From Marsupella aquatica (lineage: Eukaryota; Plantae; Marchantiophyta): a stretch of 64,000 nt of DNA. Under the pieces are notes generated by a model. It did no database searches. It was given only the letters and a program-made list of their open reading frames with translations, and was not told the DNA's origin. Below are positions 5,186 to 28,000 of this stretch, piece after piece; the first letter of the stretch is position 1, and each line of letters starts with the position of its first letter. Both the position numbers and the translations under genes were made by a program. Where the stretch lies: contig OZ316899.1 of the NCBI GenBank assembly GCA_973895155.1, forward strand, positions 767,573-831,572, read 5' to 3'.

Positions 5186-7422
5186 CCCCTTCATCCCCAT
5201 GCTTCCTAGAGTAGTTTGAGGGGACCCCAACCAGCAGAGCAGCCCCAAGTCTCCCCCACCAGATGTCGCTCCCCCGAGATTCGACGGGGTAAAATAGACG
5301 GCACAGGAGTTGCAGGAGCAACTCAGGGAACAAGAGGAGGCAACCCTGGCCAAGGAGAAGGATTTACCTGGGGGAGAATGGCTAGAGGACATCCGACGGC
5401 TTGCAGAAAAATAAAGCAGCCCTCCACCCATGTTAGAAGAGATCCGAAAGGCGGCTTGGGAACAAAGGCCGCGGTGGGTGATGCCGATGACTACTACTCA
5501 CTTCGCATATGCGCAAGACAAAGCCATGGAGTACGGGGAGATGTGTGGGGAACTTGCGCTCAACATCTTTGGGGAGGAGTTGGAGCAAGGACCTTTTTTT
5601 CCAGAGAGATATGTTGGAAAAATGCCGATTGGAAGAAGCAGTGGCTTTGGAAAGAAGAAAGAAGAACGAGATCATCCGACGGCTTAGAGAGAAGTAAGTC
5701 GAGGTAGAGGACCTGAAGGCGGCCAAGAAAGCCCAAGATGAGCTGCAGATTAAGTGGCATGAGCTAAACATCATGTAGGGGCAGCTGGATACCGCTCAGT
5801 CTGATAATCAGATTATGAAGGATAAACTGACTCGGACCCAAGGGGAGTTGGCCGATGCGGTCAAGGAAAGGGAGAAGTGGAAGCAAGAGCTGAGGGACGC
5901 AGAGGAGGCCCACATAGCAACCAACAATTGGGCCATGGCGGAGACCCAGAGGAGGGAGAGGGCGTTGAAGGGGGATCTCGAGTATATCCGTGGAGCCCTT
6001 GAACAGAAGGAGGCCGAGTTAGGGAAATCTTATCAAGGGATTATTGTGCTGCAGCAGGAGCTTGCATCCCTGACGGCCAACTTCAAGGCCGACCTGCATG
6101 AGAAAGACGACCAACTTGATCAGACTTATGCCAAGATGAACTAGATGGAGTCTGAGGTCGTGACAGAGCTCGACAAGGAGGTGAGAGCAACCTAGGAGGA
6201 GAGGGCTACCTTAAAGAAGGAAGGAGGAAGCCAGAAGGAATTGGAGGAAGCCCAAAAGGAGTTGGAGGAGGCGCAGAAGGACCTGGACAAAATGCAGGAG
6301 GAGTTTGAAGAAAGCACAAGGAAGATGGAGAACTTACAGCGGCGGGCCGATAACCAAACGAAGTGGCTGAAGAAACAAGCCGCAGTATTTAAGTGCTTGG
6401 TTTCATCAGTTCCAACTCCAAGTGGGGCAACCAAGTTGCCAGGGGTAGTACTGGCCGAAGGACAAGCCGCGACACTCGCACCGGTGCTGGAAGTAAGTGG
6501 CAAGGGGAAGGGACCAGCTGCCAAAACAGGGAAGAAGAAGAAGCAAAAACCTTCTGGGTCAGGGAGTAACACGGCTTCTCAAGCCGTAGTGACCATGGAG
6601 GAAAACCCAGCACCAACCTCAGGCAGGGTCACGGCAGAGGATACAACTATCCTAGAAGGCGGGGATAGCAAAGTTGAGGCCAGGACAGTCAGTGATGAAG
6701 CCGGGGTACCGGATCCACCACTAGAGCATGCAGGGGAGGCCGTAGCCATATTAGAGGCTGTGGCCAATGCTGAGGCTGAAGCCGAGGGTGGACGTAGTCA
6801 GGCCAATGGAGAGTTGACTTGGTCTGGGGCAGGTAATCTGTCAGAATGCGGACCTAGGGCAGTGGCTGTGGAGGAAGCATTGGGGGCGTCCATTGAGGAT
6901 CAGACACCGCTACCATGATGGTGATGGAGGGCCGATCCTTTTAAGGAGGGCGGAAGTGGAGGGAGGAGGCGTGAGTGGGCAGGGCGGGCTCAAATCTCCA
7001 AGTTTAGAATTAGGATCAGGACCAAGAGGCTATTTGTGTGTCGCATTAACTTGTTTGAAGATTGCCCACATCAACCAAGAGAAGGGAGTAAGCAAGGTAG
7101 TAAGAGTTGGATGTGTTGAGCTGAGAGAGGTCTTAGCGGCTTATCCAAGCCAGTTGGGGATCATTCCGGCGGCGGAATCCAAACATACTTAAAGGAAGAC
7201 CACGAGAGGAAGAGAAGGGAAGGCATAGAATAGGCCGGCTACGTATCTCATGACCCGATGAAGGATCTGTCCAGTATATGTGTGTAAAATGTTAGTAGTA
7301 GAAGGATTAGCAGCGTCCCATGCCGCTAAGCCGCGGAACCGGCCTCACCAAGAGCGAAACCTGCAGGAATCGGCTTGTGCAGAGGGGTTTCTTGGGTTTA
7401 GGGAGCCGTGGGACGCACCACA
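5186..7422 (+). repeat. Tandem unit A: 3' part of the giant-LTR element (second half of ORF plus 3' end), with ~400-bp internal deletion
   Basis: Colinear with ~14870-17525. Deletion at ~7029 relative to 9442-9839. Ends GCACCACA. Confidence 0.85.
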
Positions 7423-10183
7423 CCACTTCATCCCCACGCTTCCTAGAGTAGTTCGAGGGGACCCCAACCAGCAGAGCAGCCCCAAGTCTCCCCCACCAGA
7501 TGTTGCTCCCCCGAGATTTGACAGGATAAAACAGACGGCACAGGAGTTGTAGGAGCGACTCAGGGACAAGAGGAGGCAACCCTGGCCAAGGAGAAGGATT
7601 TACCTGGGGGAGAATGACCAGAGGACATCCGACAGCTTGCAAAAAAACAAAGCAGCCCTCCACCCACGTTAGAAGAGATCCAAAAGGCGGCTTGGGAACA
7701 AAGGCCACGGTGGGTGATGCTGTTGACTACTACTCACTCCACATATGCGCAAGACAGAGCCATGGAGTACGGGGAGATGTGTGGGGAACTTGCGCTCAAC
7801 ATCTTCGGGGAGTTGGAGCAAGGACCTTTTTTCCAGAGGGAGATGTTGGAAAAAAGCCGATTGGAGGAAACGGTGACTTTGGAGAGGATGAAGAAGGACG
7901 AGGTCATCCATCAGCTTAGGGAGAAGGAAGCCGTGGCAGAAAACCTGAAGGCGGCCAAGAAAGCCCAAGATGAGCTGCAGATTAAGAGGCATGAGCTCAA
8001 CATCATGCAAGGGCAATTGGATATTGCTCAATCTGATAACCAGATTATCAAGGATAAACTGACTCGGACCCAAGGGGAGTTGGCCAACGCGGTCAAGGAA
8101 AAGGAGAAACAACTTTTTATTATACTACCCCCCAAACTGGTAGTTATTAGGATACTGCCCCCAAAACTAAAATATTTAGTATACTGCCCCCAAACCGTAT
8201 CCCATCACTTTTAACCCGAGTACTTGACCACTGTTGTGTTCCGATTTGGGGGCAGTATACTAAATATTTTAGTTTTGGGGATACGGTTTGGGGGGTAGTT
8301 TAGTAAAAAGTTGAAAGGAGAAATGGAAGCGGGAGCTAAAGGACGCAAAGGAGGCCCACATAGCAACCAACAATCGGGCCATGGCGGAAACATAGAGGAA
8401 GGAGAGGGCGCTGAAGGGGGAGCTCGAGGATCTCCGCAAAGCCCTTGAGCAGAAGGAGGCCGAGTTAGGGAAATCCTATCAAGGGATTATTGTGCTACAG
8501 CAAGAGCTTGCATCCCTGACGGCCAGCTTCAAGGCCGACTTGCGTGAGAAGGATGATATGCTTGATCAGACTTACGCCAAGATGCATGAACCAGATGGAG
8601 TCTGAGGTCGTCCGAGAGCTCGACAAGGAGCTGAGAGCAACCCAAGAAGAGAGGGCTGCCTTACAGAAGGAATTGGAGGAAACACAAGGAGCTAGAGAAG
8701 GTGCACGAGGACCAAGATGAAACGCGGGAGGAGTTGGAGGAAAGCACGCGGAAGCTGGAGAACTTACAATTGCGGGCCGACAACCAAACGGAGCGGCTGA
8801 AGAAACAAGCCGCAGTGTTTAAGTGCTTGGCCTCATCAGTTCAATCTCCAATTGTGGCAACAAGGTTGCCAAGGGTATTACTGGCCGAGGGACAAACCGC
8901 GGCACTCGCACCGGTGCCGGAGGTAAGTGGCAAGGGGAAGGGACCAGCTGCCAAACAAGGGAAGAAGAAGAAGCGGAAACCTTCTGGGTCAGGGAGCAAC
9001 GTGGCTTCTCAGGTCACCATGACCAATGAGGAGAACACAGCACCGGCCTCAGGCAAGGTCACGGCAGAGGATTCGACTATCCTAGAAGGCGGGGATGGCA
9101 AGGCCGAGGCCGGGACGATCATTGATGAAGCCGTGGTAGCGGATCTATCACTAGAGCAGGCTGGGGAGGCCGTAGCCAAAGCTAAGGTTGAAGCCGAGGG
9201 TGGACCTGGTCAGGCCGCAAGAGAGTTGACTTGGTCTGGGGCAGGTAATCTATTAGAACATGGACCTACTGCAGTGGCTGCGGAGGAAGCATTGGGGGCG
9301 TCCATTGAGGATCAGCCACCGCTACCATGACGGTGGTGGAGGGCTTCTCCTTTTAGGGAGGGCAAACGTGGAGGGAGGAGGCAATTGTGGGTAGGGCGGG
9401 TGCAAATCTCCAAGTTTAGAATTAGGATCAGGACCAAGAGGTGGCCCTGAAACTTCGATTAGTGGGATTGTGGATCCACTGGTAAAAGCAACACTTGTGC
9501 TCTTGCCTCACTGTACATAGGTAGATTACAGTTAGGATAGATTAGGCTTACGCTACAAGGAATTAGGCAGATCCACTGCCAGGATAAGTACCTGGGCAGC
9601 GGGGAGTTGAGGGCCTTCTTCTTTAGCAAGTTTTTAGTGCACCAACAGGGTTGGGATCAAGTAGTAAAAGAAGCTCTTGGTTAGTTATACATTGACCCTT
9701 GTGTATATTCATGTTTCCTCATGCCTAAGAGTTGAATAGAGTTGGCCTCACGGCTTAGTTCGCAGATCTTGTGTATGAGAAGTATTGTTTGTATGGCAAG
9801 TGCATGGTATATATAACTCAGTTAGAAGGAGTCATTTTGCTATTTGTGTGTCATATTAACTTGTTTGAAGATTTCCCACATCAACCAAGAGGGAAGGGAA
9901 GTAAGCACGGTAGTAAGAGTTGGATGTGTCGAGCTGAGAGAGGTCTTAGCGTCTAACCCAAGCCAATTGGGGATCATTCCGGCGGCAGAATCCAAACATA
10001 CCTAAAGGGAGTCCAGGAGAGGAAGAGAAGGGAAGGCATAGAATAGGCCTGCTACTTATCTCATGACCCGATGAAGGATCTATCCAGTATATGTGTGTAG
10101 AATGTTAGTAGAAGAGAATTAGCAGCGTCCCATACCGATAAGCCACGGAACCGGCCTCGCCGAGAGCGAAACCTACGGGAATC
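7423..10183 (+). repeat. Tandem unit B: same 3' part of the giant-LTR element, carries a MITE, truncated just before the terminus
   Basis: Same start junction as unit A (CC[C/A]CTTCATCCCC). Colinear with unit A and 14870-17470. Confidence 0.85.
8110..8313. mobile_element. 204-bp fold-back MITE, Mutator-like
   Basis: TIRs CAACTTTTTATTATACTACCCCCCAAA / TTTGGGGGGTAGTTTAGTAAAAAGTTG, perfect 36-bp internal inverted repeat, 10-bp TSD AAAGGAGAAA (8100-8109, 8314-8323). Absent from the sister copies. Confidence 0.9.
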
Positions 10184-10186
10184 AAA

Positions 10187-12686
10187 TTTTATCCAATATC
10201 TCCCTATGGATAAAAGGCCCTATCTCCAACTCTTTCCCAAAGATGTTGAGAACAAGTAACCCGCACATCTTCCCGTACTCCAAGGCTCTGCAGCGTGCAG
10301 AGCCTTGGAGTGGTTAGGAGATGCTGGCATCTCCCAACATGGCCTTTGTTCCCACGCCGCCTTTCAAACCTTGTCAAACGTGGGCTGGGGCCCGGCTTGG
10401 TCCTCTGCAAGTTGCCAAATGTCCTCCGGCCATCCTCCGCCTGGAAAATCCTTCTCCCTGGCCAGGGTTGCCCTCTCCAGATCTCTGAGTTGCTCTTGCA
10501 ACTCCTGGTCAGCCTATTTTCTCCCATTGTAATTCGGAGGAGGGACGTCTGGTGGGGGAGACTCCAAACTCCTCTGCTATTTTGGGTCCCCACGCACCAC
10601 TCTTGAAAGTGTGGGGATGAAGCAGCCACGGGTCCACACCCCTAGTACCGAACAATCCGACCCATAGCCAAAGTCATCCTCATTGTATTCCTCCACACCC
10701 TCCCTTCTGGCCTAGAGTACTAGTGCCTGCGGATCCTCTCTTGGACTAGCTGAAAACGCGGCATCCTACCGGAAATTGTGCATGTGTGCTGGTCTCTCCT
10801 CGGGCTCCCACACCCGCCTTTCCCTCTCCTTGTCATGATTGGGAACCCTAAGCCCTTGTCCCTTGGGTTCCGGACTTGAGGCTCCCACGTACATCCGCAC
10901 CCCCGGCTTGTTTTTTGGCCTCCTTCTCTCCGTGGCCCCTGCAAAGGGATCTGATCTGGTGGGTCTTGCGGTGTCTCCCTCCCCAACAATGCCCTGTACC
11001 AGTGCCTCTACTGCCATTGTTGGCTTCTCCTTTTGTAGAATCTGCAAGAGGCTCTGCATAGCTGGTTGTTGCATTGGCATGGGTTCCGGCGTCGGCCTAA
11101 AGATCTACACTATTGTGGGGCTGTCGGGCGGTTTGGGCTTCCTTGCTGCCGGCCTTGGCTCCCACTCCTTTTCTGGCTCCCTTGCCTGTAGGGGGAGTAT
11201 TGATGCAAAGGTCTGGCTTCGGGCATACTGGCACAATAACGACATGTGATAACCAAGCCGGGACACGCTCCCCTAGCCTATCATCTGTTGTTCCTCCTTC
11301 AAGATCTTCTTAAGTTGGGTGAGGAGGTACCCATTGTAGTCTTGGCTTGGGTCTGGCCTCTCTGCCAAGTAAACCTATGCCTTGCCAATCTCCAGCCTTT
11401 CCAGGTTGCAATGCATTGTCACCCGCAAGAAATCAATGATTTCTCCAATGTGCGGGTTGATGCAGGTGTTTCAAAAGAAACCTTTCTTCGTTGGTGGCCC
11501 GGGGAACGATCTAAACTCCTTGTCCGATAAGTTCTTTCGGGTGTCTACCTTGGTCTTGTTGCCCATCGGCAAGCCAAATACTTTGGCAATCACCTTGGGA
11601 GTGAGATATAATTCCCTCCCGTAGATCTTGGTTGCATTTGACTCGTGGTCCCATGATCCCACGAATTCCAACAAGTCTGATTCCGACACCTCTAGCTTCA
11701 GCCACGGTAATCTAACAAAGGCCTCCAAGCCCAATCCGGCCATGAAGCCTTGGTACTTTCTGGAGTGCATGGCTGTAAAACATGTATCCTCCTCCCATGC
11801 AAAATGTAACTGCACTGCCGGTGGTATCACCGGCCGCATTGACTGGGTCAACTTCTTGTTCCTCGGCTTTCTCTTGCCTCTGTCTCCCTTGCTTGATTGG
11901 CTTTCTAGATGCCGCCAACCTCGTTCTCTTGGCCAAGGTGGTTTCTTCGTTGTAGGTCATCTTCCTCTTCATTTTGGCCGCTCCTGACAACTCTCCTAGC
12001 ACTATTGCTTTTGTCCACGCCTCTGTGCAACCCTTCAGGTCCCAATGTTTGTTGTTGCAGTGGTTGATGGCCTCTCGGATGCCAACAATTCTATTTTCTT
12101 GAAATAGAAGATTGTCAAGCTGATCGGCAATAGGCATCCACAGGAATGCAGCCTTGATGAGCTCTTCTCCTAGAAAGGCAGACTTCTGCAATTCCCACGG
12201 CCGAGAAAGCTCCTATCATTCTCGGGCTGCTCTCTACTCCTCGTCCTTGTATGTTCCAATATACTCAGTTGCCCGTTCAAACAGGCATCCCCAGAAGTGT
12301 GCAGCTTGATTGACGTTGCTCATTCCCACCTTGTGCCGATGCTTGGTATCTGCTTTCGCCCTCAGTGTTCACCTCAGCAACTGACAATCATTGGCTTCTC
12401 CTTGCGAGTTGCTTGATCAATGGTTGTGAATGAGTCGTCACCCTTGGTGAACCTCCCTTACCCCACTCCGGCCTACCATTGCCTGACTTGGTCATTGATT
12501 ACTTGCAACCCTAATCGTGCCCCTTAGTTGTTGTTGCACCTATTACTCTCGACCTTAGCTCGGGTTCCACAAATACCCTTAATTCTTTATATTTTCTTGT
12601 TTTTCCTCCTTATACTAAGGGTTTTAGTGTATATCACTCGGCTTTACTATTTTACAAGGCCTAGTGATTCTTGGCTAGGCATCACA
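10187..12686 (-). mobile_element. Inverted, 3'-truncated, diverged copy of the giant-LTR element (5' 2.5 kb)
   Basis: Reverse complement starts TGTGATGCCTAGCCAAGAATCACTA like 12890. Encodes homologous peptides (GLEAFVRLPWLK...VIAKVFGLPMGNKTKVDTRK). Confidence 0.9.
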
Positions 12687-12889
12687 AGATGTTATCACTC
12701 TGAAATAATTGGGTATCAGCCTTGCTACTTCCTTCCAACTTCAATTGGAAGGCCTCTGCTACCACCTTCTTGTTTAATTGGAACTCCATGTCATAGATAT
12801 AGGTTAGATTTTTATTAGCAACCCAATTGCCTACAAACTCCATTAACTCACGATCGAGTATCTCCTCATCAAGCCATGGTAAGCGCATG
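12687..12889 (-). pseudogene. Fragment of an older, diverged giant-LTR family ORF (host of the flanking insertions)
   Basis: MRLPWLDEEILDRELMEFVGNW...VVAEAFQL is homologous to VRLPWLKPEVPNSDLLEFVGSW...VIAEVFGL. Joins ...KNSGLEG at 17526 once the insertion and TSD are removed (1-bp frameshift). Confidence 0.8.
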
Positions 12890-12985
12890 TGTGATGCCTA
12901 GCCAGGAATCACTAAGCCCGGTTTACATGGTAAAGCAGGAGTGTACCCTGGAAACACCTTAGTATAGGACCAAAAACAAGGAAAA

Positions 12986-12991
12986 TATAAA
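12986..12991 (+). promoter_or_regulatory. Candidate TATA box upstream of the LTR-embedded ORF
   Basis: AAAATATAAA-N-AATTAAGGG is conserved between this copy and the diverged inverted copy, ~280 bp upstream of ATG 13268. Confidence 0.4.
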
Positions 12992-13267
12992 CAATTAAGG
13001 GTGACTATGGAACCCGGGCCGAGGCCGGAAGTAAGGACGCCGGGGGAGAGAACACGATTAGGGTTAGGGCGCGCTAAGCGTCGGTGGCTAGGGGTGACCA
13101 ACGGGAGGGGAGACCAGAGGAGGAGAGGGGTAAGGACCGCTCGCGAGGAATAGTGGCTCATTTGCAAGAACAAACTGGGCAGATGACTACGGGAGGCCAA
13201 ATGCTGTCAGCTGCTTAGACAAGCACTCGGGGTGGGAACAGATACCAACGATCGACTCAAGGAGGGT

Positions 13268-16200
13268 ATGAGCAACGTCAATCAAGCGGCACATTTTTGG
13301 GGATGCCTGTTTGAATGGGCAGGTGAGTACATCAGGACTTACGAGGACGAAGAATTGGAGAGAGTAGCTCGAGAACGGCAGGAGCTCGCTCGGCTCTGGG
13401 AACTGCAGAAGATGGCTTTCTTAGGAGGAGAACTTATCAAGGCCGAGTTCTTGTGGACTCCTACTGCCAATCAGCTCAACGACCTTCTATTTTGCAAAAA
13501 CAAAATCGTCGGCATCCGGGAAGCCATAAATCGCTGCAACAACCTACGCTGGCAGTTGAAGGGTAACACGGAGGGGTGGAAAAAGGCAACCTTGCTAGGA
13601 GAAACATCCACGGCAGCCGAGATGAAGAGGAAAGGAAACAACAATGAAGAGGCCACACCGGCAAAAAGAACGAGGTCGGCGGCACCTAGGAAGCCAGCAG
13701 AGCAGCAGAGCAGGACAAGGGGAGAAGCCGATGAGGAAGAGGTTGATCCCATCAATGCCATTCCAACAAACGATGACACCTGGAAAGGCTGGGCGGCGAC
13801 CCTACCGGAGGAAGTGCAATTACACTTTGCACGGGAGGAGGATGCATGCTTTACGGCCATGCAGACCAAGAAGTACCAAGGCTTCATGGCCGGATCCGGC
13901 TTGGAAGCCTTCGTAAGATTACCATGGCTGAAGCCGGAGGTGCCGAACTCAGACTTATTAGAATTTGTGGGATCATGGGAACCCGAGACCAATTCCACGA
14001 GGGTGTATGGGAAGGATTTCTATCTCACTCCCCGAGTGATTGCTGAGGTGTTTGGCTTGCCGATGGGTAATAAGACCAAGGTTGATACCAGGAAGACCTT
14101 ACCTGACAAGGAGTTCCGGTTGTTCCCAGGACCATCAACAAAGAATGGCTTCTTCCAGAATATCTGCACCAACCTGCACATCGGAGAGATGATCAATTTC
14201 TTGCAAGTGACCATGCACTGTAACTTGCCGACGGCAGAGATCGGCAAGGCTCAGGTCTACCTGGCAGAAAGGCTAGACCCAAGCCGGGATTACAACGGGT
14301 ACCTCCTCAACCAACTGAAGAAGATCTTGAAGGAGGAATAGCAAGTGATCGGCGTGGGAAGCGTGTCCCGACTTGGCTATCACATGCCGCTGTTGTGCCG
14401 GTATGCCAGAAGTCAAATCTTTGCCCCAGTACTTCCCCTATCGGCAAGGGCACCGGAGGAGGTCCCAGAGCAGAGGCCGGCACCAGAGAAGCCCAACCAG
14501 CCCGACAGTCCAACGATCAAGCAGGTGTTTAGGCCAAGGAAAGAAGACTTGCCGATGCAGCAACCAGGCATGCAAAATCTGTTGAAATTGCTGGAGAAGG
14601 AAAAGAGAATGGTTCCGGCAACGGCAACGGACGCTGCCCCAGAAGTCGACCTAAGCCGACTCAAAAGGGAAGACTCCTTTACCTGAACCAAGGAGAGATT
14701 GAGGCCGGAACACAAGCCGGGAGTGCGAATGTACGTGGGAGCCTCAAGCCCCAAATCAGAGGCAGAGGAGCCAGGAGTCCAAGTAGTGGAGGAGGCGGTG
14801 GAGGACTACAGCAATGATAACTTCGGCTATGGGTCGGATCATCATGTTCCAGGAGTAAGGACCTGTGGCCGATTTATCCCCACACTTCCAAGAGTAGTTC
14901 GAGGGGACCCCACCCAGCAGAGTAACCCCGAGTCTCCCCCACCAGAGGTTGCTCCCCCGAGCTTTGACGGCATAAAGCAGACGGCACAAGAATTTCAGGA
15001 GCGACTTAGGGAGGAAGAGAGAGCAGCCCTGGCTAGGGAGAAGGATTTACCAGGAGGAGATTGGCCGGAGGACATCAGGCGGCTTGCCAAAAAAAGAAGC
15101 AACCCTCTTGCCACCGTAGAAGAAATCCGCAAGACGGCTTGGGAGCAGAGGCCGCGGTGGTTGATGCCGATGACTTCTAGTTACTCCACCTATGCTAAGG
15201 ATAGAGCCATGGAGTACGGGGAGATGTGTGGGGACCTGGCGCTCAGCATCTTTGGGGAGGAGTTGGAGCAGGGACCCTTTTTCCAGAGGGAGATGTTGGA
15301 AAAGCACCGATTAGAAGAAGCGATGGCTTTGGAGAGAAGCAAGAAGGACGAGGTCATCCGACGGCTTAGAGAGAAGGAAGCCAAGGTGGAAGACCTGCAG
15401 GTGGCCAAGGAAGCCCAAGATGAGTTGTGGATTAAGCGGCATGAGCTAAACATCATGCAGGGGCAGTTGGATACCGCTCAGTCTGACAATCAGATTATCA
15501 AAGATAAACTGACTCGGACCCAAGGAGAGTTGGCCGGCGCAGTCAAGGAGAGAGAGAAATGGAAGCGGGAGCTAAGGGATGCAGAGGAAGCCCACTTAGC
15601 AACCAACAATTGAGCCATGGCGGAGACTCAAAGAAGGGAGAGGGCGTTGAAAGGAGAGCTCAAAGATATCCGCGGAGCCCTTGAGCAGAAGGAAGCAGAG
15701 TTAGGGAAATCCTATCAAGGGATTATTGCGTTGAGCAGGAGCTTGCGTCCCTGACGGCCAGCTTCAAGGCCAACTTGCATGAAAAGGACGACCAGCTCGA
15801 CCGGACTTATGCCAAGATGAATAAGATGGAGTCTGTGGTCGTCGCAGAGCTCGACAAGGAGCTAAGAGCAACCCAGGAGGAGAGGGCTACCTTGAAAAAA
15901 GAATTGGAGGAAGCCAATAAGGACCTGGAGGAGGCGCGCAAGGACTTGGACGAGACCCAGGAGGACTTGGAGGAAATCACAAGGAAGATGGAGAACCTAC
16001 AGCGGCGGGCCGACAACCAAACAGAGCGGCTGAAGACCCAAGCCGCAGTATTTAAATGCTGGCTTCATCAGGTCCAACTCCAATTGGGGGAACCCAGTTA
16101 CCAGGGGTAGTATTGGCCGAAGGACAAGCTGTAACACTCACCCCGGTGCCGGAGGTAAGTGGCAAGGGGAAGGAACCGGCTGTCGAAATAGGGAAGAAGA

Positions 16201-16580
16201 AGAAGCGGAAACCTTCTAGGTCTGGGAGTTATACGGCTTCTCAAGCCGTTGTGACCGAGAAGATAACCCCAGCACCAACCTCCGGCATCGGCACGGCGGT
16301 GGATCCACCAGTCCTAGGAAGTGGAGATGGCAAGGCCGAGGCCGGGAGAACCAGTAATGTTGCCGAGGTACCGGATCCTCCACTAGAACATACCGGGGAG
16401 GCCGTAGCCGTAGCAGAGGCCGTGACCGATGCTGAGACCGAGGCCGATGGTGGACCCAGTCAGGCCGATGAAGAGTTGACTTGGTCAGGGGCAGGTAATC
16501 TATCAGAGGACGGACCAACGACAGTGGCTGCGGAGGAAGCGTTGGGGGCGTCCATTGAGGACCAGCCACCGGTGTCGTGA
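13268..16580 (+). pseudogene. ~1,100-codon accessory protein: N-terminal helical domain, basic NLS-like segment, Athila-ORF1/Transposase_32/PMD-like domain, long coiled coil, acidic tail
   Basis: ORFs 13232-14341, 14345-14686 and 14699-15613 are in one frame, separated by single stops that are sense codons in sister copies. Two 1-bp deletions (~15735, ~16060) shift to 15775-16110 and 16056-16580. The domain family assignment is by motif resemblance only. Confidence 0.75.
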
Positions 16581-16839
16581 CGGTGTAAGGGCGCCGTCCC
16601 TTTTAGGGAGGGCGGGCGTGGAGGTAGGAGGCGTGAGTGGGCAGGGCGGGCGCTGATCTCCAAGTTTAGACTTAGGATCAGGATCAGGAGACGGCCCTGA
16701 CACTTAGATTAGTGGGATTTTGGATCCACGGGTGTGGACGACACTTGTGCTCCTGCCTCGCTGTACTTAGGTAGATTACAGTTAGGTAGATTATAGTAGA
16801 TAGATTAGGCTTACGCTGCAAGGAATCAGGCGGATCCAC

Positions 16840-16864
16840 AACCCTAAACCCTAAACCCTAAACC
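16840..16864. repeat. Short interstitial telomeric repeat (CCCTAAA)3 inserted in one copy
   Basis: ATCCAC[AACCCTAAACCCTAAACCCTAAA]CCAGGATA versus ATCCAC[TG]CCAGGATA at 9571-9586. Confidence 0.9.
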
Positions 16865-17525
16865 AGGATAAGTACCTGGGCTGCGGGGAGTTCAGGGCCT
16901 CTTCTTTAGCAAGTTTCTAGTTGCACCAGCAGGGCTGGGATCAAGTAGTAAGAGAAGCTCTCGGTTAGTTATACAGTGACCCTTGTGTATATTCATGTTT
17001 CCTCATACTTAAGAACTGAATAGAGTTGGCCTCACGGCCTAGTTCGCAGAGCTTGTGTATGAGATGTACTGTTTGTATGGCAAGTGCATGGTATAACTCA
17101 GTCAGAAGGAGTCATTTTGCTATTTGTGTGTCGCATTAACTTGTGTGAAGAGTGCCCACATCAACTAATAGAGGAATAGAAGTAAGCAGGGGAGTGAGAG
17201 TTGGATGTGTCGAGCTGAGAGAGGTCTTAGCGGCTTAACCAAGCCAATTGGGGATCATTCTGGCGGCGGAATCCAAACATACCTAATGGAAGACCAGGAG
17301 AGGAATACAAGGGAGGGACTAGAATAGGCCGACTAAGTATCTCATGACCCGATGAAGGATCTATCCAGTATATGTGTGTAAAATGTTAATAGAAGTAGTT
17401 GAAGGAGAGTTAGCAACGTCCCATGCCGCTAAACTGCGAAAACGGCCTCGCCAAGGACGAAACCTGCGGGAATCGACTTGAGCAAGGGGGTTTCTTGGGT
17501 TTGGGGAGGCAGGGGACGCACCACA

Positions 17526-20137
17526 GCATGAACCCTCCAATCCTGAGTTTTTCATAAGACCTGAAAACTTATATGACTGGATGGTTGTAATAGCCTCCAC
17601 ATTCTCTATGGGTCTTACCAGCTTCAATCTAGCCACTACTGGTACAATATCCATCCACCCCTTCCAGTTCCAATACTTGGGTGGTGACGTGATTGGAATT
17701 GCCTCGTAATTGGCATCATCATCTATTGCCTCTTGGTTTGATCCATGTCCCGAACCAACCTTTGTCACTCTCATCTCTCTCCCATGTCCACGACCTCCTG
17801 GATTGGTGTTTCTTCCTTTTTTTGTTGGTGGCTCTGCATTAGTTACGCCATTTACTACCCGTTTCTTGACTTTGGCATCCTTCAGAGCTGCCTTTCCTGC
17901 CATCTCTACCTAGGCTGCAATTTGCTTCTCAGGTCTCCAAGAGTCCTCTCCCCCTAAGATCTTCTCTGGCGCCCACTCTTCCGTAGTCCCAGGTAAATTC
18001 CAATGCTCTAATGAAGTCGCGGAACTTGACTACCTTAACACTTAGCTCCGGCGTTGCTGACTCTGACGCCGAGCTCTTATGGTCCAGGCCCAAATAGGCC
18101 ATCTGGGGAGGACTTAGCATGGGGAGACTAGTGGGCACTGAGACGTGGCACTAGCAAAGGCAAGGAGCCAAGCTGGTGACACACACTAAAGACTTAGGCA
18201 AGTTGAGAGCTTTTCGGGTCAAGGGGAAAGGGGCTGGACTCAAGGTTGACCGTCCGGGCCCCTGGACGGACTTTGAGTTCTGAGGGCTTAAGTGTGAGCT
18301 CCTCTTGGGCCCAAGGCCAATGGAGTTGACGCCATGGGCAACGGACGCTTGGGGCGTGAGTTAGGGCCCGATCTGGGTTTGGCCGATCGGGGACCCCGAG
18401 CGGTGATGAGACCTGAGGTCCTAGGCATGAGCACTGGGTCGGCCCAATCACAATGGGCTAAGGCACTCCGCTTGCGGATGCTTAACGAGAAAGTTATGGG
18501 CATTGTCAGTTGGTGGCACGCGCGATAGGATCCGGGTTGGAGGCCAAATATTTAGGGACCAAAGTTGGTCCGGGGGTGGCAGGTCTCCAGAAGCATATAT
18601 GAGGGGAGTGGTGTCTCCCTTGGGGCCAAGGGCGAGCCGAAGTCGTGAGCCGCGGTGGTCGCGACATTAAGGGAAACCTCCAAACGGAAACGACGATATC
18701 TTCCCAACATGAAGTCCGTTGGAGGACTTCTTGGGTGCATTAGAAAGCTCTTGAGGAGGGCTACGTCCTCCTGATCTTAGCTGGGTCTAGGGGTGCCATG
18801 GGTTCTTGAGGTTTGCGGGTGTTAGCTCACCCGCTTGCCAAATCCTGCCGAACAGCAACCAAGCAGCGTTCAGTATCCCAAGGGAGCTTGCGTTGGGGAG
18901 GCAAGGCCAAGTAGGCGTGGAGGTTGAGTTCCAAGGGTGATCGGCCTCTAGACCATCAGTGGGGCGAGAACCGGGAGTTGGTTGCTAAAGTCGGGGCCGT
19001 TCTGGTCCGGGCGTGTTTGGAACAAGCTTTAGGACAAGCTACGCTATTTGGGCCATGAGCATGTCCTGGGGTCAGGGCGGTCAATTGGTGATGGATAGGT
19101 ATGAGGGGGAACCCGGGCCGCACCCAAGGAAGGGACTGTTCTGGATGAACAGTAGGTGTGGGTTCTGGTTCCGGCTTATGGCATCGGGAGGACCTATCGC
19201 TGACCTATTTACCAACGTCTGTTGAGCTTGAGTTAGGATGCTAGACTTGGCGAGTTCTAGATCCTGAAGGGTTACTTACCAAGGTGCTTGGTTGCTTGTG
19301 CAGATGGTGAGGACCGTTGAGTAGCGGTCGTGTTGGAGGGCAAGTGCGGCTTTGTATGGGAGGGGCCGCTGGTAGTGCAAGGGGCACTAGGTTGCTTGCT
19401 CAAGGTATTCCGTGGAGGCGTTTGGGCACCAGGGGCACTTAGGCATGAGTGCTGGGATTGGTGAGGGCGTTGGGTGGCAAGGTCCATCACTATTGAGCAC
19501 CAATAGACTACCTGTCGAATGGACCGTAGATTCCCATCCTCGAAACAAAGAGCGTTCAAATCCTCCACATTGGATTCCCACTTGAATTTTGCATCAATGT
19601 AATCTCCAATGATAAACACAATTGACGCTGCATCCCACAATTGTGCAATGTCTACCCGTTCTCGCTCAGCTCTCTCAGGATCAGTTTCCTCATATGTCTT
19701 TACTAGCTTACGTGCATAGTTGAGCAATGTTTGCCATAAATGCCTGGCCTGATTAACCTTAGCCGTCGATACTTAGATGAAGAAATGATAGACTAAACTC
19801 TAAACCCTACTGATGACAATCTGGAGAGCTCGCCCGACAAGTAATATTCTAGGGTGTGAAGAGAAGAATGAACAGTGTCTTTCCAATCTTCCCTCCTTAC
19901 CCCCTGCCGTAGATGAGAGAACAGTACATATAGTCCTGGGAATATTGTCGTTGTACTCTTGTATATACTCCATAGTAGCCGTTCATATCAGCAATTAGCA
20001 AGCTCCTTACTCTAAGCCTTATTCTAAACTAGTTTCTATACTATTTGTTTTAAAAACACATAACCTATGCTAATACTGTACACAAGCTGGGTTTTTACCC
20101 ACTGATTTTATACACTGATCCCAATAAGGGCATCACA
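17526..20137 (-). mobile_element. Oldest, most diverged giant-LTR family copy (5' part; host), interrupted at 18012-19489
   Basis: 5' terminus TGTGATGCC at 20137. Peptides VNQARHLWQTLLNYARKLVKTYEE..., HWNLPGTTEEW...ILG and WKGWMDIVP...KFSGLMKNSGLEG align to the 13268 ORF. Confidence 0.75.
18012..19489 (-). mobile_element. Probable 1,478-bp solo LTR
   Basis: TG...CA ends (TGATG...CTTCA on the minus strand), 4-bp TSD CTAA/CTAT. Removing it restores the in-frame host peptide CSIEHWNLPG. GC-rich, no recognisable domain. Confidence 0.55.
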
Positions 20138-21169
20138 AATCTCTTCAAAAAATTTCTACATACTATATGGAGAAATTAGGCTAACAATATACAAATGATT
20201 AGGGAATATTGTACTATAGTTAAATGAAGATTGTAGCAACTTACTTAGAAGTTGAATGAACAAAGTTGTCAAAAAGCTGGATAGCAAATTGGATTTTCCA
20301 TAAATTATTTACAATTTTGTTCAATCTTTGTGTAGACATAGGTCCATACTAACACTATATACACATCCTTGACACCAAAGTGCTAGAGAGTGTGCTTTGG
20401 CCTTTTGGGTTTGTTTATCTCTATGCCCACAATTGATCTTTGTGCTATGGTGGTCGTTCAAATATATTGGGTGCATTCTCACTCTTGTTTAAAGATCACA
20501 TGTACAAAACACCATGCATAGAAACTAGAGTTAGTTGCTATTGTAACTAGAAGTCTTGGAAGGTATATATCATTTGGGGTCCATAAAAGAGCCCTTTCTA
20601 GGTTCTGGAGATTTGATAATGACAACATACTCCTCACTGGTATATGACCTCAATTTTCAATTTATTTGCACATGTTTTGTTTTCATTGGTAAGGAAAACA
20701 ACATCCTTTTAGGCCAAAGATTAGGGTGGGCTTGGTGATATGGGCACTAGGTAAGACTGCACTGAAGCTAGTGGGTGATGACCAGTGATCAAGCTAGAGG
20801 CCAGATTGAAGATAGTCAAGCTCAAGCTGAGTAGCCACCCACAAAGAAGCTAATTATACTGAAGATCAAGCTTAAGGTGATAGGAGACCTAAGCTAAAAA
20901 ATAAGCCCCCGTATCTAATGGCAAATTATATTGTGCATTTGGGAAAATAATGCTAAAGTAGCAACTTAGGCAGATCACTGCACACGGTTGAGCATATTGG
21001 GTTCTCACATCATTGCTTGTTGTCATTATTCTATGTTGTTTATGACATACATTTATTATTATTATTACATTATTCCCCACACTGCATACCTACCTGATAT
21101 TGGAAGTACATGATGAATTAGGATACTCCAGTCAGCTGGAATTTTATCTTTTTGCCCTATCCTAACAGT

Positions 21170-21910
21170 ACACACCATGAAGTGAGTCCACCTAAGTTCA
21201 AGCTTTGAGGTGCATGATTACACAGTTCCAAGATTCCAATAAGGAGTGTCAAAGCACAGTCAAATGTAACTCAGTTATTGCTCACAGCATAAAACACCAT
21301 TACAGCCAGGACAAAATCACTAATTATGGGCCACCAAAATATGAATCCCATAAGGGTGATACGTCCAAAGAAATAAATCTGTAACACTTTGACACACCCT
21401 ATTCATCCTTTTGGATTGTTGTACACCAAAGGTGCACTAACAAAACCAGAAAGGGCATAGCCATAAGGACCCCACATACTCTACCCCAGAGGTGTACTGA
21501 AAGATTTGGAAAGGGCAAAAATTCATTTTGCCTAGGCCTTTGTATGACATTCCGGAGGCAACAGGGTTTAGGGAGGGGTTTCCTAACTAAGGAATGTCAA
21601 TTACGTGCATCCTGTCGGCTGAGATTTTAGCATTTTGTCATATCCCAATCCAACACACCATGAAATTAGCCCACCTGAGTTCAAGCTCAGAGGTGTGCAA
21701 GATTACACAATCTGTTCCAATATTTGGCTCCTGCTCTACACCAAAGGCACATTGAAAGCGGGACTGAAAGAATGGGAAAGGGCGCTCCTCGTGTGGCTCC
21801 CACTCCATGTCGGAAAGGGAAATGTCATACAAAGGTGTACTGAAAGAAAGAGAACGGGCAAAAAAATTATTTTCCCTTGGCTTGTTTATGGCATTCCGGA
21901 CACAGTGGGT
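21170..21910. repeat. Diverged tandem duplication, ~480-bp period
   Basis: CACACCATGAA...GTTCAAGCT...GATTACACA and AGGTGTACTGAAAG...GGGCAAAAA...CATTCCGGA each occur twice (~21170/21654 and ~21490/21833). Confidence 0.6.
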
Positions 21911-22719
21911 GGGTCTCCTCAAGAATGTAACTACCTGGGGGCTGGTGCAAGTGGAAAGAGCGTCGGTGGCAGATTAAGAGCTTGGAAGCCGCATTCATGA
22001 GGACACAAAAGCAGGTTTAATTTGGCCTTCAGTTGCTTCCTATTGGCTATGACCAATTCAAGCATGGGAGCCTTGGGGACACGTGTACTTAGTGCCCACT
22101 TCATTTTGGGGCCGTTCATAGGAATCCATATTATTATCCTTTTGAGAAAATCTTTGGTGATGGCTTGGATTATCAAAACAATGAGCGTGAATATTATGCT
22201 GCAGTTAAACATAATTGTAGCAAATCACACCAAATATAGTACCGTACATGTCTATGTGCCTCTAGATCTAGTTCCCCTACAATTCTTTCTAGTTGAACCA
22301 AGGTTGACAAGTAGGGACAGTGGGTTCCTGGGTGCATAGACTTTGTGAATCTTCCTGGGGAAGTGGTGGATTTCATTCACGCCTATCACCAGAGCAACCG
22401 GATATCTGGACTCAAATGCATTTAATCATTTTTAGTGATGAATGTTAATTACTTGGTGTTATTGACACTATTGTAATGGGCTCGTAGACTGTTGTAAGAA
22501 CCTGGGGAGCACGACCATTCTCATTGTTACCATAGTCTAGCATGACATTTGTCTACATATCAAACTGATATCAAACCAAGATAGTGTGCCAACAGAGGTT
22601 TGGTGTACATACTAGACTAGTGGTAAGAAGGGATAGTGATGTCTTCCAAGCCTATGGCCATGCCAACATTCTATTTTATCCCACCACTTGTGGTGACAGT
22701 ATTGCGTCAAGCGCAACAT

Positions 22720-22970
22720 TTGGAATATCTTTAGCACAGTGGGCTTGTAGACTTTGTTTTGGGAGTTTGTTGGGAAACTAAGAGTCATTCTAAGTCTGAC
22801 ATGATAGATTTCATCCAGAACTTTGGCAGCAAACAATGTGAAACATGGGTTTGCGAGGGAAGAATAGACTTGAGTTTGGATTTGATCAAGAAGACATTCA
22901 AGTTGCAAGGGGAGGCATTTGAGCAAAAGGTAGTTCAATATAATCCAAGGTCATTTGCAGGGATTAAAAG
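22720..22970 (+). pseudogene. Fragment of another Athila-ORF1/PMD-like accessory domain
   Basis: SGLVDFVLGVCWETK...DMIDFIQNF...IDLSLDLIKKTFKLQGE aligns with SGLEAFVRLPW...DLLEFVGSW...LTPRVIAEVFGLPMG. Cut by the LTR at 22971. Confidence 0.55.
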
Positions 22971-23530
22971 TGTCATGAGGACACACATCCATACACAACT
23001 CACATTGCGGCACACCATGTCAACAAGAAAACCAAAATCACACGACACACAACACATGTACGCCAAAATCCATAACAATCTCTTGCAAAACGGGACCCCA
23101 CTGCAAGGTATCACTAAGTCAAGCCAAACTCACCCGCTAGCCATGCAAGACTCCAAGTCTATACACATAGCAGAACCCTGCCAATGTCGCTCTCCATGCC
23201 AACCGACATACACTCTCTCTCTCTCACCATAGTCACACTCACATGAGCTCTACTAGTGCCGGGAGGCTCAACTTGGAAGAATGAGGAGCTAATCCCTCAT
23301 TCTCCAAGGTATACCCCCATGTCACAAAGGCATGGTAACCTGGGTGAAGAGGTCACCCTCCCAAACTCACAACACATGTGCAACCAACAAAGTTGCAACT
23401 CAAATGCAACATGGGGTGACAGCTGTCGGGCGGACACACATCCATACACAACTCACATTGAGGCACACCATGTAAACAAGAAAACCAAAATCACACGACA
23501 CACAACACATGTACACCAAAATCCATAACC
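22971..23530 (-). repeat. 3' LTR (~560 bp) of the PHD-bearing gypsy element
   Basis: Follows PPT AGGGGGGCG (23531-23539, minus). Ends ...TCATGACA. Contains a ~95-bp direct repeat at both ends (22981-23075, 23435-23529). Confidence 0.65.
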
Positions 23531-23704
23531 GCCCCCCTAGTTGGTGGTTAGGTCCCACTAACTATAGCTAGCCCAAAAACTAAAAGGAAGTATACACCTT
23601 TAGGGTGCACAGATCAAGAGGTCGGGTGCAAAGGAGCCCCATCATTAATCGTCTACCTGCAATCTATACTACCTAATGAGTTTTATGCTAATCAAAGCCA
23701 CTCT

Positions 23705-24203
23705 CTATCTACAATTGGGACACAACCACTGTCCTTCAAGAACTGAATCAAGAGGTGACGTCAAACACGCCAAGTGCCAACCTCTTGAGTAGCCATCACA
23801 AATCAACATGGTTGCAGCTCCACGGGCGGATCCACACAACATACACCATAAGCCTGTAGGTATCACTACTAGACTAGGATCGATGATATCATCAATGTTT
23901 GGAAGGTGACAAGGTGCACAGTTGCGTACATGATCCTTCCAAACCATACCATCACAACCTTCTAAAACCAGAATTCCTGATGGAAAAACCTTCTGCACTC
24001 ATAGAATAGTACGTCCGGCAGTGACATCCAAAGTAGTAGGTGCTGTCTGTTGCAGATACACATAGTCTCCAGAATGAAATTGCCTGATGCTAGGACGATA
24101 TCCTCCTCCCCGAATAGTGGCACACCTCAAAGTATCCCAATGCTGCGCAATAGCTAAGTTCTCAAATGCCATGGGCATCACTCTCCAAAACAAGTCTGCC
24201 CGT
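23705..24203 (-). pseudogene. pol: Gypsy integrase C-terminus with terminal PHD finger
   Basis: ...FHSGDYVYL...EGCDG...CAPCHLP then CMLC...LICDGYSRGWHLACL...WLCPNC (C4HC3 with one Cys to Tyr). Continues the integrase at 29180. Confidence 0.85.
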
Positions 24204-25053
24204 TGTCGTGCCGAAAGATTTCGGCTCATGAATGGCTTTTATAGGGGATGATGGGCGAGGACTCTCGGTTGGGTTGCGTGCATGCTGACTCGGAGGGGCT
24301 GCTTGGTTGGATGGATTGAGGTTTGGCAATTGGGTGACTCGTCGTCACCAGGTTTGGTGTTTGGGTGAGTCACCAGGCTTGGAGTTTGGATGAGCCTCGC
24401 TGCTGGCAACTGGCTCAGGCTGGATGGTTGGGTTTCCGATGCTACTTAAGACTTGAGCCTTGCCTCATTGAGGTTGGCGGTTGTCTATTGAGATCTGTTG
24501 AGTTGCGTTCTGTGAGTTTCGCTCCGTTGTGCGGAACTCGACTCTTGTGCGACGGTTTTGGAGTTCTGAGTGAGTTTTCAATCCAGGTGGGGAGTTTTTG
24601 ATCCAGACGGGGAATTTCTTGAGTCTGGAGTCTCGTTGATCCAGGCGGGGATTTCTCGAGTTTGGAGTCTTGTCGATCTAGGCGAGGATTTCTCGAGTTT
24701 GGAGCCTCGTTGGTCCAGGCCCGAGTTCCGTGTGAGCTGTTTTAGACTAGTGGAGTAGCTAGTCGAGTTTTTGGTTTTGTGAGTTAAGGAAGATAGTTTT
24801 TCTGTCAGATTTTGAGTAGTTAGTCACTCGAGGAGTTCTACCCAACAAGTTAGAGGTAGCGGCCCGCCGTAGGGCCAGCTACTAGACTCTTGCGGGCAAG
24901 CTTACTCGAGGGCACCTATTGTAACCTTTGTGAGAAAAGTAAAAAATATAAAGGAGTGAGAGTTCACTCCGAAAAGTGCTTGTCACCTGTCCCGATCGCA
25001 GCCAGAAATGCGTAGTTTGCCAGAGGAGCCCCTAACTTTAAGTCCTCGCGACA
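24204..25053 (+). repeat. 5' LTR containing ~37-bp tandem subrepeats (GATCCAGGCGGGGATTTCTCGAGTTTGGAGTCTCGTT) at ~24579-24722
   Basis: Direct alignment with 28330-29179. Confidence 0.92.
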
Positions 25054-25094
25054 TTGGCAACCATACTGGGGATTCCTTGGGGCGATTGGATGAG

Positions 25095-28000
25095 ATGGGT
25101 GACTATGACGAAGTCGATCGGATATCGAGCATCGTCATGTCGATGATGAGAACCATAAGGAAGGAAGAGCTTGAGTCGGAAAGGGCAAACAAGGAAGCGA
25201 ATAGAACTACTCGGTGTCTCCAAGAGGTTTTGAAGGAGAATGGGCAGTTCGATGGGAGAAATGTGACAAGCTACCTTAAGTCTTACTTGACAGAAGTAGT
25301 TGTCTACAAGTTGGACAAAGGGACAGCCGTGAAAGAGTTCATGGTGCTGGTTGAGAAGGAGTTGAGTTCGACGGTGCGGACCATCGTTGAGTCAGCTGAG
25401 GGCTGGGATGACTTCGACCAGAAGATGAAAGAGGAGTTCCAAGCGGAGGATGTTGATCGGGTCACGCAGGCTACCTTCTTGGATTGGGTGAATGATAGGA
25501 ACAAGAAGCTGAAGGGGCCGCAAGAGCTCCTAAGGGAGTTCAAGAGAAGGGTGTCTCAGTTACCAAAGCGGGATGTGGGAATCATCAAGTTGCAGCGCTC
25601 GACGCTCTTCTTGAGGGCAGCCGATGAGGACCTTCGAGAGGAGCTTGAGAACGCGATGGAGCTGCTGGAACCTTTGAGAGTTACCTTGTCTAACGAGTGG
25701 AACCAAGTTGAGAAAGCGGTGTCAAAAGTGAGCAATCGACACCGGCGGCGAGAGCTAGACAAGCAGGCTACCACTCTCGACCTAAGGCCGTCGGAACCGA
25801 TATTGAGGAAAGGGAAGCGAGAACCAGTGAAGGATGAGATCAAGCCATCGATGGATGATCTCGCGGAAATGATGCAGAACCTAAAGATCTTGGCAGCACA
25901 TGCGGTCGAGAATCCAAAATTGAGGGTTGCGAGTGCTCCCAAGAGGAAGCGAGAGATGCAGAGTTGGCCATGCATGTGGTGCAACAGCAAAGAGCATGAT
26001 AAATGGGAGTGCCTGGACCTGAGGGAAGCTGTAGATAAAGGGCTGATCAAGTTTGTCGGTGAAGTTGGTCAGAAAAAGATATCGTTTGCCAACACTGAGG
26101 AGCCAATTCCATTCAACTCCAACAAGGGAGGCATGAAGGCTTTGGCTGAGAAGCGAGCTGGGAAGCAAGTCGAAGAGGCATCCTCTTCGCACCTGGAAGC
26201 GAATGTTTACAATGTGGAGTTGGATGGCCCTGTGACAGAAACGGACAAGTTTTACAAGCGCTTGGTGGATCTGGTGTGAGAGAGAGATGGAGTGACCCGG
26301 TGCTGATCAATGCGATAACGGTTGAGGTTGGGGCTAGTTGGGATGCCTCGGTTGAGTCAAAAAGGAAGAAAACCGACGAGGATGACACTCCGTCTCAATC
26401 AGGGGAACAAGAGAGGCAAGATACTCGAGACAAGGAAAGGAGGGTTAGGTTCAAAGAAGACGAAATGAGCGAGAAAGAGCCAGAGAAAGGGAAACCGATT
26501 AGGAAGGACCCGGGCTGGGTGCTTGGCAGGGACGTGGACCAGGCCATGTACCCGGAGGTTGTAGCTGAGAAGTTCTGGAGCCAACAGGCTCAAGGGTTTA
26601 CCAACGCCAAGTTCTTTGGTAGTATGAGGCGGGAGATCTAGGAAGCAATCTTGGAGAGATCCAAGAGGGAACGGATTTACAAAGAGGGCCCTCACACCTT
26701 GATGGGGGAGGCTGGCGAGACGGAAATTGGGAGTTTCCGAACTTACACTGTTGGGGTGTCCATGGGTTCAGGTAGTAAGCTTGCTGGCCCCGAAGAGTCA
26801 GATTTGGGGGAACCAAAGAGGGTCAAGTCCCTTGAAGAGGAGCTCATGAACTTGGACGATGAGTTCTTTGATGTGGAAGAGGACCTCATGGGAACCGGAA
26901 GCGAAGCTGAGTCTGTGGCAAACAGGGACCCGACCAAAGGGGGAGAACGGGAAAGCATTACCGCACAGTCGAGGACCATTCATGTCATGGGCTCAATGAA
27001 AGGAAACGATTATGCTTACCGAGATGGATACTGGGCTTGAGCAAGTCCGGAGAGCGAGTGCCAGTTGGAAGGAATGGAAGGCAAGGTGCGGGCGCTCATT
27101 GATACTGGCTCGGAGATCAACTTGATGGATCCAAAGGTGTTTCAAAAGGGGAATTGGCCGGTGGACAATGAGTTGCTTTGGAGTGTGAACTCGGTGAGTT
27201 CAATGAAGGACTATCTTTGGGGCGGATGTCCAAATGTGATGGTGAAGTTCGGGAATGTCAAGCAGGCTTGTAACATTTTTGTTCATGAGCACTTGTCGTT
27301 TCCGGTGATACTGGGCATGCCGTTCATCACTGAATGGAGGATGGAGACGAAGGTTCTGGATGATACTACCTTCATGGTGAAGGTTTGGGGCAAAGATGAT
27401 AAGGAGGTGGTTCAGTTTCCGACGGTTCTACCTGGAAATGAGAGGAACCAAAAGCAGTTGCGAGATCCAATAGCGGCAGAAGTTGGCATTGCTATGGGGG
27501 AGAACCGAGATGCTAAGATGGATCTAAGTGCAAAGTTCAAAGGGGAGCCAATTGCGGACCAAAAGATGGGGAGTCTAGTGTTCAAGGAAGAGTGTTACTC
27601 AAGAGAGCTACTGGACATTGGGAAGTACCTGAGTGACTTTGGGAAGCGGCTGAAGCAGGATGGTAAAGAGTTCGAAGACATTCGAGTGAATTCTGATAAG
27701 TTCATTCTTAGAGAGGGCTACCTTTGGCGGAAACCTAAGGGCCCCATGCTAGTACCGAGGAGAGTTGTCGATTCTAAGGATGAGCAAAAGCGGATTTTGG
27801 AGGAAGTCTATGATGCTGAGGTCAAAGGTGGTTTGAAAGGAGTAAGGGCAAAGGTCTGTGAGCGGATCCAAAAGGAGTATTGGTGGCCAGATTTGTATTG
27901 GGATGTTCAGGAGGATGCTGACAATCGAGGGATCCATCACAACTTGAAGAGGCAGATTCAAGAGCTTGATCGGATTGACTATCGAGTCGTTGACATACGG

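Follow-up and report, generated by a model that had tools for sequence, protein, structure and literature searches.

Positions 12890-17525 of the window (the whole stretch of 64,000 nucleotides that was analysed) are a solo LTR from a plant retrotransposon, and this LTR contains a complete protein gene. On balance, we favour the view that this LTR belongs to a Ty3/gypsy (Athila-like) lineage, that the gene inside it is the accessory gene of that lineage, and that the position of the PPT marks the boundary of the LTR. More tentatively, we propose that, in what would be an old lineage of land-plant elements, this accessory gene may have moved between the internal region of the element and its LTR through a jump of the boundary between two PPT copies, with both architectures being represented in the one window and the gene in the LTR being held under purifying selection. 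Coordinates of the features are collected in Table 1.

Table 1. Features of the giant LTR and the Athila-like element in the window, with the LTRs of Calypogeia fissa relatives
Feature	Position	Strand	Length and remarks
Solo giant LTR ("right copy")	12890-17525	+	4636 bp; TGTGATGC start, GCACCACA end (…CACCACA)
Target-site duplication GCATG, left copy, of right giant LTR	12885-12889		5 bp
Target-site duplication GCATG, right copy, of right giant LTR	17526-17530		5 bp
LTR-borne accessory ORF	13232-16580	+	about 1,100 codons; degenerate in right copy; about 70% of LTR
Flagged tract TTTTAGGGAGGGCGG	16601-16615	+	within G-rich stretch of about 60 nt (16601-16655) after ORF stop
Non-coding LTR tail	16616-17525	+	about 0.9 kb; ancestral short LTR of the original prediction
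Inverted, cut-off second giant-LTR copy ("left copy")	10186-12686	-	aligns with 12890-15303, 72% identity
Older, diverged giant-LTR-like copy ("Z")	17526-20137, continuing 12889-12687	-	TGTGATGCC start at 20137
Tandem array of giant-LTR 3' 2.65 kb	5007-10183	+	179-bp tail, unit A (5186-7422), unit B (7423-10183)
Full-length Athila-like Ty3/gypsy element	41486-55030	+	LTRs 1388 bp, 100% identical; duplication GGAAG; primer-binding region from 42880
PPT1, internal PPT copy	50143-50157	+	23 nt past pol stop
Accessory ORF of Athila-like element	50503-53076	+	intact, 857 codons; shared domain at residues ~14-183
PPT2, LTR-proximal PPT copy	53626-53640	+	2 nt before 3' LTR
Calypogeia fissa L005, full-length element	3' LTR 9201-13614		4414 bp, TGTGAGGCGG...TTAACA; 5' LTR seen to its end at 2984
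Calypogeia fissa L007, solo LTR			4558 bp; flanks match 4/5
Calypogeia fissa L001 and L006			5' LTRs, then gag-pol

The solo LTR and its copies in the window

The original prediction had treated the 4.6-kb unit as a real LTR, and the structure of the unit bears this out: its termini TGTGATGC and GCACCACA are of the TG...CA type, match one another in inverted orientation at 7 of 8 positions, and are bordered by the 5-bp GCATG duplication. The left copy, read on the minus strand from 12686, has the same first base and the same first 15 nt as the right copy, and its upstream flank (beyond 12686) is not purine-rich. The right copy was inserted into copy Z, as protein similarity runs on at both sides of the insertion. 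In Z, the domain-bearing ORF begins about 335 nt after the start of the copy, compared to 342 nt in the right copy, and its TGTGATGCC start is preceded by a weak T-run and GAAGAGA, the only such flank among the giant-LTR copies of the window.

For the window's own giant-LTR family, no direct pair of giant LTRs around gag-pol was found within the window. Z was considered as a 3' LTR to the pol that lies at 31741-29225 on the minus strand and rejected, there being no integrase C-terminus or other link in 20138-24203; the block 5006-12686 was likewise rejected as one insertion, its flanks not matching as a target duplication. No clear TATA-like motif was seen in the LTR tail of the window. Short telomere-type (CCCTAAA)n runs occur in this tail (at about 16843-16870) and also at 32548-32574 and 38012-38039.

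The protein gene inside the LTR

Between the giant-LTR copies, dN/dS is 0.13-0.22 (0.13-0.16 and 0.22) over the first two thirds of the ORF and 0.56-0.68 in the low-complexity C-terminal ORF piece. The former values indicate that the LTR ORF evolved under purifying selection and, thus, that it was a working gene during the diversification of the family. In the right copy, at least two in-frame stops and two frame changes interrupt the ORF, whose conserved domain lies at residues ~200-340 of the first ORF piece.

A profile search with this first piece, against 1.84 billion proteins, gave 23 matches. The best of these, P0002, has 37% identity over 219 aa and comes from a short contig on which the ORFs follow in the same succession; the liverwort Calypogeia fissa contributed two more of the 23 matches, whose paralogues supplied usable loci. 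P0012 was rejected as a bacterial false positive. A word-indexed protein search with the first ORF piece returned no match, exact look-ups of the window ORFs returned no record, and two metagenome scans (one with an alignment of the C-terminal ORF, the other with the first ORF piece) returned no relatives. In Pfam, at E-values up to 5, no family was found for the 857-aa ORF of the Athila-like element, the LTR ORF pieces, P0002, or P0027. The AlphaFold model of the first ORF piece has a pLDDT of 51.5.

Gene-bearing LTRs in Calypogeia fissa

In the Calypogeia fissa element L005, a direct pair of ORF-bearing LTRs encloses gag-pol and a PPT. Over the 3 kb available for comparison, which include the part that encodes the domain, the two LTRs have 94-95% identity; they enclose gag, protease, RT, RNase H, and integrase, for which aa identity to the pol of the Athila-like element in the window is 54-60%. 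A second Calypogeia family, on the minus strand of L001, has the same PPT, followed by TGTGAGGC and then by some 2.9 kb of sequence in which the domain is encoded, the LTR start of this family being placed from the motif. When compared by hhalign, the Calypogeia LTR ORFs match the window LTR ORF with 97.8% probability (E 1e-12). Together with the full-length and solo LTRs of Calypogeia, this match shows that gene-bearing giant LTRs are a real architecture, common to the two species.

Within the Calypogeia giant LTRs, no relic PPT was found, the best internal match being reached by 139 of 200 shuffles. A TATA-like motif is present about 470 nt past the ORF in L001. In the same locus, positions 9201-17561 hold a truncated giant-LTR element that is nested, in opposite orientation, in a full-length element of the second family (2727-21395); this self-nesting is of the same kind as that in the window.

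PPT position and gene order in the two architectures

The Athila-like element at 41486-55030 is a very recent insertion, as indicated by its fully identical LTRs, its perfect GGAAG duplication, and its intact 857-codon accessory ORF. Pfam domains for RT, RNase H, and integrase lie at 47167-50119, and its pol appears as four consecutive ORFs in a bacterial-style ORF list. The Pfam ATHILA model is unmatched by the accessory ORFs of the window, and "Athila" is a provisional label for the element.

Identical PPTs on both sides of the accessory ORFs of this element had been predicted, and these are indeed present: ATTTAAGTGGAGGGC stands at 50143 and 53626, one base from the 50142 and 53625 first given, these being exactly the two occurrences in the whole window. 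Identity between PPT1 and PPT2 is complete over the 15-mer and amounts to 24 of 30 nt when the upstream GGGACA context is included. As an internal, same-strand copy of the LTR-proximal PPT, 50143-50157 is a candidate central PPT. The segment from PPT1 to the end of the LTR (50158-55030) measures 4873 bp, in agreement with the LTR of about 4.9 kb that the original prediction had derived for priming at the upstream copy.

The PPT had further been expected to stand in front of long LTRs, and so it does in the full-length relatives from Calypogeia fissa, with the same motif and at the position of PPT1. In L005, the giant LTR starts with TGTGAGG directly after CAATTAAGTGGGGAGCTA; in the window, PPT2 reads AAATTTAAGTGGAGGGCTA, followed directly by TGTGG, and PPT1 reads CAATTTAAGTGGAGGGCGG. 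Between the last integrase residue that could be aligned and the start of the PPT core, the spacing is 39 nt in L005 and 43 nt for PPT1; from these spacings, the Calypogeia PPT that sets the edge of the giant LTR is the positional counterpart of the internal PPT1 in the window element.

The giant LTR and the segment from PPT1 to the LTR end also share one order of parts, i.e., a head, an ORF with the shared domain, and a non-coding tail. In the window giant LTR, the head before the ORF is 342 nt long; its counterpart in the Athila-like element, from PPT1 to the 857-codon ORF, is 345 nt long. The total lengths are 4636 bp (window giant LTR), 4873 bp (PPT1 to LTR end), and 4414 bp (L005). The domain of the 857-residue ORF matches the LTR ORFs with E 7e-6 in tblastn and E 0.004 in BLASTP, while hhalign gives 67% (E 5e-5) and 51% (E 1.5e-4) for two independent profiles that align the same residues. 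Homology between the internal 857-aa ORF and the LTR ORFs is, on these alignments, probable but not firm. The two ORFs had been predicted to have the same N-terminal domain; a shared domain that is probably homologous was recovered (at the above 67% and 51%), but its location is N-terminal only in the Athila-like ORF, with the LTR ORF having it at ~200-340. P0001, a homologue of the 857-aa ORF from a Logan contig, has a below-threshold match (E 0.014) to Pfam PF20167 (Transposase_32, "putative plant transposon protein"), which covers the region aligned with the shared domain and offers a lead for the naming of the latter.

No DNA similarity was found among the heads or tails of the three LTR types, including the 1388-bp Athila-like LTR and the Calypogeia tail, so the case for positional homology is built on the PPT motif, on pol, and on gene order. 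The suggestion that the window holds the "before and after" states of one process was not upheld: its two elements are of different families, without DNA similarity and with domains that are about 20% identical. By sequence, the window giant LTR and the Athila-like element are cousins, and not ancestor and descendant.

The tract after the ORF

It was the tract TTTTAGGGAGGGCGG at 16601-16615 that the original prediction had read as a relic PPT, left behind as the LTR grew by switching to an upstream PPT. The tract itself is confirmed by direct reading, 20 nt past the stop (TGA at 16578-16580) of the ORF at 16056-16580; unit A has TTTTAAGGAGGGCGGAAGTGGAGGG from 6939, again as described, and unit B has a version with two mismatches at 9351. 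The ORF stop codon and the G-rich run of about 60 nt are kept in all three copies compared (right copy, unit A, and unit B), with 16601-16655 containing six runs of at least three G.

The properties of the tract argue against its reading as a relic. Its purine content is 10 of 15, on a plus strand that is 60% purine across the giant LTR and that contains 42 tracts with at least 13 of 15 purines, of which several precede a TG; judged as a purine tract, the flagged one is ordinary and no better than chance. Nor is it specially conserved, three-way identity of the right copy and units A and B being 0.67 over the tract versus a median of 0.75. No terminal repeat like an LTR start follows it. The reverse complement of the giant-LTR 3' end is TGTGGTGC, which the true start TGTGATGC at 12890 mirrors at 7 of 8 positions, and neither TGGAGG (16619) nor TGAGTGG (16634) mirrors that end; a purine run followed by a TG mirroring the LTR end is thus absent from 16601-16615. 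Relatives with an LTR of about 0.9 kb beginning past the purine tract, as anticipated for the ancestral state, were not found.

The claimed resemblance to the Athila-like PPT was borne out in part. The 15-mer of this PPT, at up to three mismatches, has no match in the window giant LTR, and a search with the PPT motif at up to two substitutions returned nothing in any giant LTR. In a local alignment of the 22-nt PPT1 region with the 4.6-kb LTR, the flagged tract is the single best match in the giant LTR (1 of 76 windows), and lies in the predicted 120 nt, but its score of 20 was reached by 31 of 200 dinucleotide shuffles LTR-wide. With the 120 nt after the stop shuffled alone, the score was reached 19 times in 2000 for the right copy and 11 times in 2000 for unit A (p ~0.01); as this test was post hoc, we read its result as suggestive only. 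Overall, we consider it unlikely that 16601-16615 is the leftover of a lost PPT, and the tract may be no more than a portion of the G-rich run downstream of the ORF.

The tandem array of LTR 3' parts

Array units A and B each correspond to 14873-17525 of the right copy, and their beginning is at the equivalent of 14873 and not at the tract. At the array junction, the last base of the LTR is followed by 3-4 nt and then by a mid-ORF position. Since this junction cuts the ORF mid-way, the array is secondary, and we take it to be a secondary rearrangement (e.g., a nested insertion of the same family followed by unequal recombination) and not the trace of a short LTR. Neighbouring units match in a mosaic way, with 91% identity around the junctions and 83.5% mid-unit, and unit A is without some 400 bp that are present in unit B and in the right copy.

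A reading of units A and B as arrays of short LTRs and internal regions was rejected, given that no primer-binding-like region follows CACCACA, that each unit opens within the ORF (at the 14873 equivalent), and that identity is unchanged at the tract. A minus-strand reading of the element, in which GGGGATGAAGGGG meets TGTGGTGC at the array junction, was also rejected; the plus orientation of the giant LTR is fixed by the selected ORF and by the Calypogeia relatives, and the junction cuts the ORF.

Next to the array, a minus-strand fragment of a non-Athila-like Ty3/gypsy element at 3384-4980 encodes gag (with a zinc knuckle) and protease. This fragment is severed by the tandem array 49 bp upstream of its start codon, and is most closely related to the gag of the Calypogeia giant-LTR family.

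A proposed shift of the LTR boundary and its alternatives

In the giant-LTR lineage, the PPT directly after pol would set the 5' edge of the LTR, and everything from that PPT to the end of U5 would be duplicated at both ends of the element, i.e., the head of about 340 nt, the ORF, the promoter, and R/U5. The Athila-like element has the same post-pol PPT together with a second, identical PPT past its accessory ORFs, the second of these setting the LTR of 1.4 kb. The two architectures would hence differ by the position of the PPT that marks the LTR boundary, from which we infer a change of PPT use. This retains one part of the original prediction, namely that the LTR boundary is set by which PPT is used, for which the position of the Calypogeia PPT and the colinearity of the two architectures argue; it does not retain the short-to-long direction or the relic. 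Shortening in the Athila-like lineage and lengthening in the giant-LTR lineage are equally good stories.

Were the giant LTR the older state, the Athila-like lineage would have gained a second PPT past its accessory ORFs, thereby shortening its LTR and leaving the gene outside it, and the tract at 16601-16615 would be no relic. As a specific account, this seems to us unlikely, despite the window giant family and two Calypogeia families, three of the four lineages compared, having the ORF inside the LTR, the appearance of PPT2 as a duplicate of about 30 nt of PPT1 (24 of 30 identical), and the Calypogeia LTRs being without a relic. Those four lineages are a sample without a tree, the best PPT1-like match in the window LTR falls right after the ORF stop, and flowering-plant Athila elements have short LTRs with the ORF internal. 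The length given for Athila LTRs in the ATHILAfinder preprint is 1-2 kb.

Less likely still is an independent capture, whereby the ORF would have entered U3 by recombination or template switching with the RNA of another element, and the G-rich stretch would be promoter-proximal or quadruplex-prone. Such a capture would need the LTR to start by coincidence exactly at the post-pol PPT, at a PPT1-like distance, and would need a second coincidence in the length of the head (342 versus 345 nt); the captured gene would, moreover, have to be the lineage's own accessory gene. It would nonetheless be compatible with the six G runs of 16601-16655, with a tract that is unremarkable as a PPT, and with heads and tails that are without DNA similarity to the Athila-like element. 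That the 4.6-kb unit is not an LTR at all, and instead belongs to a larger tandem or palindromic repeat or is a mobile element of another kind, is very improbable. This reading would draw on the window being without a direct pair around gag-pol, on the tandem repetition of the 3' 2.65 kb at 5007-10183, and on the inverted copy 203 bp away; it is largely refuted by the 5-bp duplication and the TG...CA termini, by a first base that is the same in copies differing by 28%, by homologous ORF-bearing units that are proven LTRs in Calypogeia, and by the secondary nature of an array whose junction falls mid-ORF. Of the accounts considered, a move of the LTR edge from one PPT copy to another is the most parsimonious and the one that we prefer.

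Relation to known systems

An accessory ORF downstream of pol is a hallmark of Athila-type elements, and in flowering-plant Athila elements, the LTRs are short and this ORF is internal. The elements described here are like Athila/Tat-type Ty3/gypsy elements in their gag-PR-RT-RH-INT order, their accessory ("env-like") ORF past pol, their conserved PPT/LTR junction, their 5-bp duplication, and their TG...CA ends. They differ in having the accessory ORF inside an LTR of 4.4-4.6 kb, whereas Athila LTRs measure 1-2 kb (ATHILAfinder preprint). Internal or central PPTs are known in lentiviruses, in yeast Ty1/Ty3, and in Arabidopsis EVADE, where they prime extra plus strands (PMC7197481, PMC5371799). 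As in these systems, PPT1 of the Athila-like element is a second PPT upstream of the LTR-proximal copy and a PPT copy after pol is in itself ordinary. A central PPT does not set the LTR edge, however, whereas the pol-proximal PPT of the giant-LTR elements is the sole and LTR-defining one.

Genes in U3 occur in a few retroviruses, such as that for the superantigen of mouse mammary tumour virus, as well as nef, which overlaps U3 in primate lentiviruses; their transcripts are either the 3' portion of the genomic RNA or a subgenomic RNA. The giant LTRs may be likened to them in having protein-coding sequence within or overlapping U3, but the lineages and proteins are unrelated, and the ORF here is far larger, with about 1,100 codons that take up some 70% of the LTR. 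Very long, non-coding LTRs are a feature of Ogre elements and of the LARD/Sukkula elements of Triticeae, which resemble the present family in LTRs of 4-5 kb and in the frequency of solo LTRs. To our knowledge, no conserved protein gene is known from the LTRs of Ogre or LARD/Sukkula elements. In the papers searched, we found no account of an accessory ORF lying within LTRs of the Athila type and none of LTRs growing through a PPT switch, which is not proof of novelty.

LTRs are usually treated as non-coding control regions, and annotation pipelines limit their length (the ATHILAfinder default being 1-2 kb). If the present reading is true, such tools would overlook or wrongly divide gene-bearing LTRs of 4.4-4.6 kb, and solo LTRs would pass for genes. 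A shift of the boundary from PPT to PPT, if true, would offer a simple and general route for the growth and shrinkage of LTRs, and for the entry of genes into them and their exit. The shared accessory-ORF domain, which is without a Pfam family, also gains a defined phylogenetic spread, from the liverwort Calypogeia to the organism of the window.

Other elements in the window

Several other elements were noted. An 877-codon ORF at 67-2700 (plus strand) has Pfam RVT_1 and zf-RVT domains, corresponding to a non-LTR (LINE-type) reverse transcriptase that is unrelated to the giant LTR. An RT-RNase H-integrase fragment of another Ty3/gypsy element lies at 29225-31741 (minus strand), and no gag or LTR linked to it was found. 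Adjoining this minus-strand integrase fragment is a small LTR element at 24204-29180 (plus strand), with 851-bp LTRs that are 96.6% identical; as its internal region has only a weak match to an integrase zinc finger, it is probably non-autonomous. Finally, the ORF at 60241-61182 (minus strand) matches Pfam GAGA_bind (the BBR/BPC family of plant transcription factors), in keeping with a land-plant source of the window, and is likely a host gene.
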